NCBI GenBank assembly: GCA_025558095.1
Contig: JAIVFI010000031.1
Coordinates: forward strand, 248,001-312,000
DNA length: 64,000 nucleotides
Reading direction: 5' to 3'
From: Hyaloraphidium curvatum SAG 235-1
Taxonomy: Eukaryota > Fungi > Monoblepharomycota
Shown here piece after piece: positions 62,541 to 64,000 of this stretch; the stretch's first letter is position 1, and every line of letters begins with the position of its first letter. Made by a program: the position numbers and the translations under genes. The notes beneath the pieces are model-generated. The model was not told the origin of the DNA and made no database searches. It was given only the letters and a program-made list of their open reading frames with translations.

Positions 62541-63511
62541 ATGGTTGTTGCCGTCGGACTCGGTGGTGACGCACGTCCCCTGCCATCCCTCCTCGACGAT
62601 TCCCATCCTGGCCCGACTAGCGCCGAGATGCCTCTTGCTCCTGCTTCTCCTAGGTCTCTCCGTCCCGGGAAGCGACGCCAACACGGAGAAGATCCGCCTG
62701 GCGGTCGGGGGACGTGACGAAACTCCGTGCTTCGCCGGAGACCCCGCCCTCGTCGGCCATAGCCAAATGTGGCCGCGGGCCCGCATCCTCGCCGCTCTGA
62801 CAAGAGCGGAAGAGTGAGAAACACTTTGCGTCGGGTTCCACTGCCCGGACCGATGAGATTTCCTACTCAGATCGCCCAAGCCGGTCCTGCAACCTCCTTA
62901 CACCCTCGCCCCCGGAAACGTCCTGAACGCGACCTGCTGCGGCCCGGGAGCATCGTGGGACGTCGATGTCTATTTCATTCGCGCGAATGAGGTCGGGACG
63001 GCGCACGAGCTGCGGATATCGTACCCCGCGACGGTGGGGCGGCTCCACTCCCGCTCTCGACTTGCCGGCCTGACTCCGGGACGCAGTTCCCGGCGGACTT
63101 TTACCAGGACGTCTTTACTGCGGGCTGTTTCGTGCGGTTCCTGGGCCGGGATGCGGGGTCGCTCGCGGCGCCGACGACGGGCGAGCTCCAGCTTGCCTCG
63201 CACGTGCAGCTCGTTGCAGCAAAGGCCACGGGCGTCGCCCTGCCGGACAAGCACCTTCCCACGCTCGTGCCCTATGATATGGGTGGGTGCTCCGTCGTTC
63301 GTCGGCTCGTGCGGGGAGCTAAACGCGGACGATCCGGGCAGTGCTCGACAGGCTCTACTTCGGGGCCGTGCCCCACTCTTCCCTCCGCCTGATCGCCTTC
63401 CTCGTCGCCCTCATCATCCTGTCCGCCAAGTTCGCCGTGCCTTGGGTCGCCGCACGCATCGAAGCCATCCTCGACGCCCCCGACGCCGGAAACCGCCCCA
63501 AAACAGATTGA
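62541..63511 (+). CDS. Signal-peptide and C-terminal TM protein, Pga1-like (GPI mannosyltransferase II co-activator)
   Basis: Leu-rich signal followed by ANTEK, ELRISYPAT, VPYD|IVLDRLYFGAVP plus TM helix. Start uncertain. Confidence 0.55.
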
Positions 63512-63694: not shown

Positions 63695-64000
63695 CTAGTG
63701 CGAGGAAGCACCCTTGAGCTCGGCGGCCTGCTCGGGGCCAATGACGAGTTTCGGGAGGCCGGCGTCTGCAAGCGCGGGGAGGGTCAGTCGGTGCCGGCGG
63801 AAGATGCACGCAGGGCAACGCACGGTAGTGGTGGTACTCGGGAGGCGAGGGCAGGTTCCACTCGAGGCCGACGGTGGCGAGGGTCTCGGGCTCACGAAGG
63901 TTGCCGTACCGGAACTTGGTGAAGAAGAGCGGGGGCATGCTGCAAACCGGCCGGGATGAGCGAAAATGCGGCCCACGGCCCGCGCGATAACCCACATCTG
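63695..64000 (-). CDS. 3' end of a nuclear gene encoding a Cox1 C-terminal-tail-like peptide (candidate Cox1-c); 5' part outside window
   Basis: Introns 63940-63995 and 63766-63823 give ..QIMPPLFFTKFRYGNLREPETLATVGLEWNLPSPPEYHHYHAGLPKLVIGPEQAAELKGASSH*. Confidence 0.7.
   Translation of the reverse strand, partial: QMWVIARAVGRIFAHPGRFAACPRSSSPSSGTATFVSPRPSPPSASSGTCPRLPSTTTTVRCPACIFRRHRLTLPALADAGLPKLVIGPEQAAELKGASSH

Follow-up and report, generated by a model that had tools for sequence, protein, structure and literature searches.

At the right edge of the window, by which we mean the whole 64,000-nucleotide stretch of DNA analysed here from the zoosporic, monoblepharid chytrid fungus Hyaloraphidium curvatum, lies the 3' end of a seven-exon nuclear gene that is encoded on the minus strand and continues past the edge. 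The entire gene occupies positions 311695-313362 of contig JAIVFI010000031.1, a nuclear contig of 572,809 bp, and is present as a single copy in the H. curvatum genome. Its product is KAI9009171.1 (label P0001), a protein of 323 residues deposited as a "hypothetical protein". We searched the exons one by one, and the full-length protein considered below is the database entry itself rather than a join of exons of our own making; the translations of all seven exons are contained in it, ordered and contiguous.

The coding sequence of exon 7, the last exon, spans 63695..63765 on the minus strand and ends with the stop codon TAG at 63695-63697. It supplies residues 302-323 and reads (H)AGLPKL...SSH-stop, with the initial His contributed by a split codon. 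This exon encodes the end of a Cox1-like tail (F/Y-x-x-x-P-K), followed by a variable stretch whose final residue, a His, is conserved. Intron 6 (63766..63823, minus strand) is a 58-nt, phase 1 intron, GTGCGT...TTGCAG, whose excision reproduces the annotated KAI9009171.1 exactly. Exon 6 (63824..63939, minus strand; 116 nt) encodes residues 263-300, where the homology to the Cox1 C-terminus has its core, and reads MPPLFF...GLEWNLPSPPEYHHY, in which the motifs FF-x-K-x-x-Y-G and LEW-x-x-PSPP-x-x-HH-Y follow one another. In a close relative from an environmental assembly (P0047), the open reading frame starts at the same MPPLFF.

Directly upstream of the start of the Cox1-like segment lies intron 5 (63940..63995, minus strand), which is 56 nt long, in phase 2, and reads GTGGGT...TTGCAG. 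Because the reading frame is uninterrupted at this point in many other chytrids, we regard intron 5 as lineage-specific rather than left over from the fusion. The last 5 nt of exon 5 (63996..64000, minus strand) complete the part of the gene inside the window. In numbering extended beyond the edge, exon 5 runs on to 64309, exons 4, 3 and 2 lie at 64364-64419, 64481-64655 and 64926-65126, and exon 1, with the ATG 1.36 kb past the window edge, lies at 65324-65362, all on the minus strand. These five exons upstream of exon 6 encode a predicted presequence and an SPFH domain. All six introns, which range from 54 to 270 nt, have GT-AG boundaries, and GC3 is 0.94 across 320 codons.

A sequence-only reading of the window had described two canonical short introns here and had placed them in a nuclear, intron-containing gene. 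Both statements hold: the two introns inside the window are GT-AG introns of 56 and 58 nt with translations as described, and the complete gene has six such introns and nuclear codon use. The same reading had pointed beyond the edge, to a mitochondrial presequence and the rest of the gene, and it is there that we found an Arg-rich, presequence-like N-terminus and the SPFH/Band-7 domain.

On the opposite strand, a convergent gene ends close by. Its last exon, on the plus strand at about 63340-63511 of the window, stops with TGA at 63509-63511, 183 nt from the stop codon of the seven-exon gene. This exon encodes a hydrophobic helix (..LIAFLVALIILSAKF..), and the product looks like a small membrane protein.

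Predicted presequence, SPFH domain and tail

KAI9009171.1 is composed of three parts: a predicted presequence, an SPFH/Band-7 domain, and a disordered tail of about 60 residues. Residues 1 to ~30 are Arg-rich and free of acidic residues, resembling a matrix presequence, and in 8 of the 10 full-length family members the first 30 residues hold three to five Arg or Lys and no Asp or Glu. These features predict that the protein is directed to mitochondria and imported.

The SPFH/Band-7 domain lies at residues ~81-230. Pfam Band_7 (PF01145) matches KAI9009171.1 with 32.0 bits, against a curated cut-off of 23.6, and matches the homologues P0006 and P0013 with 56.8 and 50.9 bits. When the PDB was searched with a profile of the family, the best match was E. 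coli QmcA (E 2e-12), followed by stomatins, HflK/C and prohibitin. An AlphaFold2 model built from an alignment of 25 sequences has pLDDT values of 85-98 across residues ~70-235, the SPFH region, and Foldseek searches returned human stomatin, HflK, prohibitin and QmcA at E values of about 1e-8 to 1e-6. No hydrophobic segment was found in KAI9009171.1, where the maximum KD(19) is 1.12. Neither the coiled-coil region nor Band_7_C (PF16200) was detected in KAI9009171.1, P0003, P0006 or P0013.

Before the SPFH domain, at residues ~47-80 (exon 2), there is a family-specific block with the pattern G-[IV]-P-x-E-x-x-R-x-[IL]-x3-E-x-x-W-x-[FVT]-W-[ST]. It is kept in all full-length chytrid homologues, is modelled with moderate confidence, and does not align with SLP-2. 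At the other end of the protein, residues ~250-323 are predicted to be disordered (pLDDT 35-55). His is the final residue in most complete family members (..SH, ..AH, ..KH, ..GH), where it follows a variable stretch of 10-15 residues; in KAI9009171.1 its codon, the last of the gene, is at 63698-63700 of the window. This terminal His may make contact with a metal or a protein.

Cox1 homology of the tail

We considered the relationship of the tail to Cox1 with a profile made from the tails of nine homologues, which was searched against 177,635 distinct PDB sequences at E<=10. There were 22 matches, and 21 of them were Cox1 chains, each aligned at the extreme C-terminus, within the last ~40 residues. 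The best was plant COX1 (7jro_a, residues 496-519 of 527, E 0.003), and the others included Cox1 of Paracoccus (1qle_A, residues 511-532 of 538, E 0.005), Rhodobacter (residues 534-556 of 566), bovine mitochondria (residues 475-508 of 514) and yeast (residues 503-525 of 530). Actinobacterial Cox1 chains gave a collinear alignment over 42 profile positions, which runs from the aromatic-x-K-x-x-YG motif after TM12 (FF-x-K-x-x-YG) through LEW and (S/C)PP to H-x-F and E-x-P. By these alignments, the tail is the counterpart of the whole hydrophilic domain that follows TM12 in Cox1.

The specificity of these matches for Cox1, their C-terminal position and their collinearity indicate that the resemblance goes beyond chance. 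With so short a homologous segment, the individual E-values are modest, at 0.003-0.06. Searched by itself, the 38-residue exon had no match in the PDB, and the tail exons had none in Pfam. A scan of bacterial genomes with the tail pattern likewise returned no relatives, because the pattern contained a double His (HHF/HHY) that is the family's own and is not seen in canonical Cox1.

The tail is also the most conserved part of the protein. The LEW...SPP-x-x-H-x-F motif is invariant or nearly so among 25 homologues. Averaged over sequence pairs, identity amounts to 0.80 in the LEW..HHF core and to 0.62 across residues 267-305, the Cox1-like tail; for the SPFH domain it is 0.33. The sequence-only reading had taken the locus to be a gene for the C-terminal tail of Cox1. 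As far as the last ~45-60 residues are concerned, the PDB profile search bears this out, since they are homologous to the post-TM12 domain of Cox1, but the tail makes up merely the last fifth of a 323-residue protein whose remainder is predicted presequence and SPFH/Band-7 domain.

Distribution of the fusion and its SLP-2 neighbour

Exon 5 (104 residues), searched against 1.84 billion representative proteins, had only 10 matches at E<=0.001, among them KAI9009171.1 at 100% identity. A word search of the protein database with the tail region of KAI9009171.1 returned one close relative. The same fused architecture is present in at least seven chytrid genera: besides H. curvatum, we found it in Gonapodya prolifera, where it is annotated as "Band 7 domain-containing protein", Gorgonomyces haynaldii, Phlyctochytrium bullatum, Batrachochytrium salamandrivorans, Blyttiomyces helicus and Caulochytrium protostelioides. 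JGI, ENA and Logan environmental or run assemblies contribute more than 30 further family sequences, some of which are full-length, unbroken open reading frames on transcript-sized contigs about 1 kb long. A profile of the tail alone, searched among proteins of 41-130 residues, recovered no free-standing Cox1-c, just exon-level fragments of the same family that still bear the end of the SPFH domain. Within the databases searched, the fusion of SPFH domain and Cox1 tail appears confined to chytrids.

Because these genera share one architecture, we place the fusion before the split between Monoblepharidomycetes and Chytridiomycetes. The sequence-only reading had considered an event in the lineage of H. 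curvatum; we assign it to Chytridiomycota as a whole (Monoblepharidomycetes and Chytridiomycetes). Two deposited models of one B. salamandrivorans gene disagree in length (P0019 and P0013, 296 and 323 residues). The shorter omits part of the conserved N-terminal block and changes one SPFH strand, and it is probably an annotation mis-splice.

Just past the window edge, on the plus strand, lies a canonical SLP-2/STOML2 orthologue, from position 313570 of contig JAIVFI010000031.1 onward (1971-~3560 of locus L003). It carries VPQQEAWVVERMGRF and the motifs that follow. The two genes stand head-to-head with 207 bp between their start codons, a spacing that makes a bidirectional promoter likely. In Gorgonomyces (L005) and in three assemblies of B. 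salamandrivorans (L006-L008), a canonical SLP-2 gene with Band_7 and Band_7_C is found in tandem, immediately upstream of the gene for the SPFH-tail protein; in Gonapodya, the canonical SLP-2 gene is not adjacent to it.

The neighbours are also related in sequence and structure. In Gorgonomyces, the two proteins are 36% identical over 90 residues in the N-terminal half of the SPFH domain (E 2e-15); between the second halves of the domain, BLASTP found no match. In H. curvatum, a phase-0 intron interrupts both genes at a homologous point, DPYK|A in SLP-2 and DLSK|V in the SPFH-tail gene. The adjacency, the 36% identity and the common intron position together lead us to derive the carrier from a duplicated SLP-2. 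Since the PF16200 region that the adjacent canonical genes carry is missing from it, the gene is a derived SLP-2 paralogue and not an SLP-2 orthologue. The simplest history is a tandem DNA duplication of SLP-2, in one copy of which the coiled-coil C-terminus was swapped for a 3' fragment of cox1.

A proposed split cox1 in Chytridiomycota and its relation to known systems

The gene model, the homology of both parts of the protein, the pattern of conservation and the linkage to SLP-2 are matters of observation or computation. As a whole they are best explained, we think probably though with considerable room for doubt, by a protein that joins a presequence, an SLP-2-derived SPFH carrier and a Cox1 C-terminal tail, and that serves a split mitochondrial Cox1. 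In other words, a fungal lineage may have transferred a piece of the normally mitochondrial cox1 gene, from its 3' end, to the nucleus. The protein may be imported into mitochondria, the mitochondrial cox1 may be truncated to match, and the imported tail may be incorporated into complex IV.

Such a transfer could have proceeded as follows. On the stem of Chytridiomycota, the 3' end of mitochondrial cox1 would have been copied to the 3' end of a duplicate of SLP-2 and have gained from that duplicate both a promoter and an import signal, after which the mitochondrial copy of the tail would have become dispensable. The precursor, consisting of presequence, soluble SPFH domain and tail, would be imported into the matrix. 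There the tail, disordered alone, would dock in trans onto the matrix face of the mtDNA-encoded Cox1 core, occupying the usual site of the covalent Cox1 C-terminus and supplying the LEW...SPP..H.F motif. The SPFH domain would ride along, either as an extra matrix lobe or as a carrier for import or assembly. We found no precedent for an SPFH domain of ~170 residues on the matrix face of complex IV.

The mitochondrial side of this proposal can be set against earlier work. A search of the whole 31.9-Mb H. curvatum assembly with PF00115 (COX1) gave no match, and we conclude from this that the assembly does not include mtDNA. The work of Gawryluk & Gray 2010 (Mol Biol Evol 27:7) on Cox1-c is summarised in a 2017 review, which notes that the Cox1-c motif includes a conserved His implicated in proton entry, and that in all identified cases the cox1-c region transferred to the nucleus is no longer recognisable in the mtDNA (PMC5664110). 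Given that precedent, we regard a split cox1 in chytrids as reasonably probable. In the literature, we found no report of Cox1-c, COX1C or split cox1 in chytrids or other fungi, nor of a fusion between SPFH and Cox1 sequences.

SLP-2 has been linked to the organisation of the respiratory chain, in scaffold and assembly roles, and a function of that kind would suit the alternative that survives best. Here the chytrid mitochondrial cox1 would be intact, and the nuclear SPFH protein would use a tail copied from Cox1 as a decoy or adaptor; during the biogenesis of complex IV this captured copy could, for example, fill the sites at which nuclear-encoded subunits, or regulators of translation or assembly, bind the Cox1 tail. 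A binding mimic would also require a Cox1-derived, strongly conserved tail, and the carrier derives from SLP-2, as the adjacency of the genes in H. curvatum, Gorgonomyces and B. salamandrivorans shows. The 2017 review states that split cox1 is not found in fungi, nor in animals or plants (PMC5664110), and chytrid cox1 genes may have been among those inspected and seen to be intact. On the other hand, the SPFH part is without the region, coiled coil and Band_7_C, that is needed to form a scaffold, and every structural motif residue of the tail is kept across deeply diverged chytrid classes, as predicted for a genuine piece of the subunit. The loss of the transferred region from mtDNA in every identified case (PMC5664110) likewise argues against a retained, intact cox1. 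We therefore hold a tail that imitates Cox1 to be possible, though rather unlikely.

A chance origin, in which the tail would be a C-terminal extension of the SPFH family with an accidental likeness to Cox1 and no relation to cytochrome oxidase, is much less probable still. The similarity is short, the single sequence is without a PDB match, the profile E-values reach just the range given above, and Pfam is silent on the tail exons. Against these points, a profile confronted with 177,635 sequences would have had to select almost nothing except the extreme C-terminus of Cox1, and all of these matches run collinear with the tail, the distances from the post-TM12 aromatic motif to LEW, and from there to SPP..H.F..P, being unchanged. 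The adjacent canonical SLP-2 genes, moreover, end differently, in Band_7_C. We rejected this explanation as very unlikely on the specificity, position and collinearity of the Cox1 matches. The sequence-only reading had already argued from introns and high GC3 against a recent NUMT. A recent NUMT, a pseudogene or an annotation artefact, for which nothing speaks except how often mitochondrial DNA inserts into nuclear genomes in general, is so improbable that we set it aside on conservation and gene structure: the gene is single-copy with six GT-AG introns and high GC3, its intact frame agrees with an independent annotation, orthologues in at least seven genera conserve that frame, and unbroken full-length frames recur on transcript-sized contigs of about 1 kb.

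Returning to a divided Cox1, we can state its full consequence. Cox1 would be split throughout the phylum Chytridiomycota, with a mitochondrial cox1 that ends after TM12, a C-terminal domain delivered from the nucleus on a duplicated SLP-2, a complex IV with a built-in SPFH module on its matrix side, and a fission that arose independently within Opisthokonta. Taken jointly, these statements are ones that we favour by a small measure.

Few proteins are, to our knowledge, encoded in practically all mitochondrial genomes; Cox1 is one of them, and its partial relocation as Cox1-c is a textbook example of a gene transferred piece by piece. What is new here is a Cox1-c-type tail in Fungi, fused to an SLP-2-derived SPFH carrier and possibly paired with a truncated mitochondrial cox1, in proteins that have so far been annotated only as hypothetical or as Band 7. 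The genera concerned include Batrachochytrium, to which amphibian pathogens belong; among chytrids, Spizellomyces can be cultured. If the proposal is true, a fungal case changes the known distribution of Cox1-c and bears on whether the fission is ancient or recurrent. The route of activation would be unusually clear: a gene for a mitochondrial protein would have been duplicated in tandem and the duplicate would have taken up the fragment, and the linkage of parent and daughter that persists in three genera would preserve a record of how the import signal was gained. The proposal also predicts an unprecedented composition of complex IV, with an SPFH-domain subunit.

The closest known counterpart of the tail is the Cox1-c of protists (CoxIV of Dictyostelium). 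In both systems a nuclear gene encodes the hydrophilic, matrix-exposed post-TM12 domain of Cox1, and the SPP-x-x-H motif stands behind an import signal, which is a predicted one in the chytrid protein. In contrast to the protist form, the chytrid form is fungal and is carried as the C-terminal tail of an SPFH carrier of ~250 residues. Intact plant, bacterial and animal Cox1 were matched by the tail profile, with no separate Cox1-c chain among the PDB matches at E<=10.

For the carrier, the appropriate comparison is SLP-2/STOML2 (bacterial counterpart QmcA; PF01145). The two share the SPFH fold, the N-terminal half of which is 36% identical to that of the neighbouring chytrid SLP-2, as well as one intron position, and each is expected to reside in the matrix of mitochondria or on their inner membrane. 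They differ in that the cage-building region of SLP-2, its coiled coil and Band_7_C (PF16200), is replaced by the Cox1 tail in the chytrid protein, which is also without a hydrophobic anchor and has a much diverged SPFH sequence.

The proposed mode of capture is best compared with organelle-to-nucleus transfers in plants, which gain targeting from an existing gene for a mitochondrial protein, as rps14 has done within sdh2 in grasses. In both situations a mitochondrial fragment would take its promoter and presequence from a nuclear gene that was already present. Unlike the plant examples, the chytrid host gene is a duplicate that still lies beside its parent, and its carrier domain appears to have stayed part of the mature reading frame from a time that precedes the divergence of the chytrid classes.
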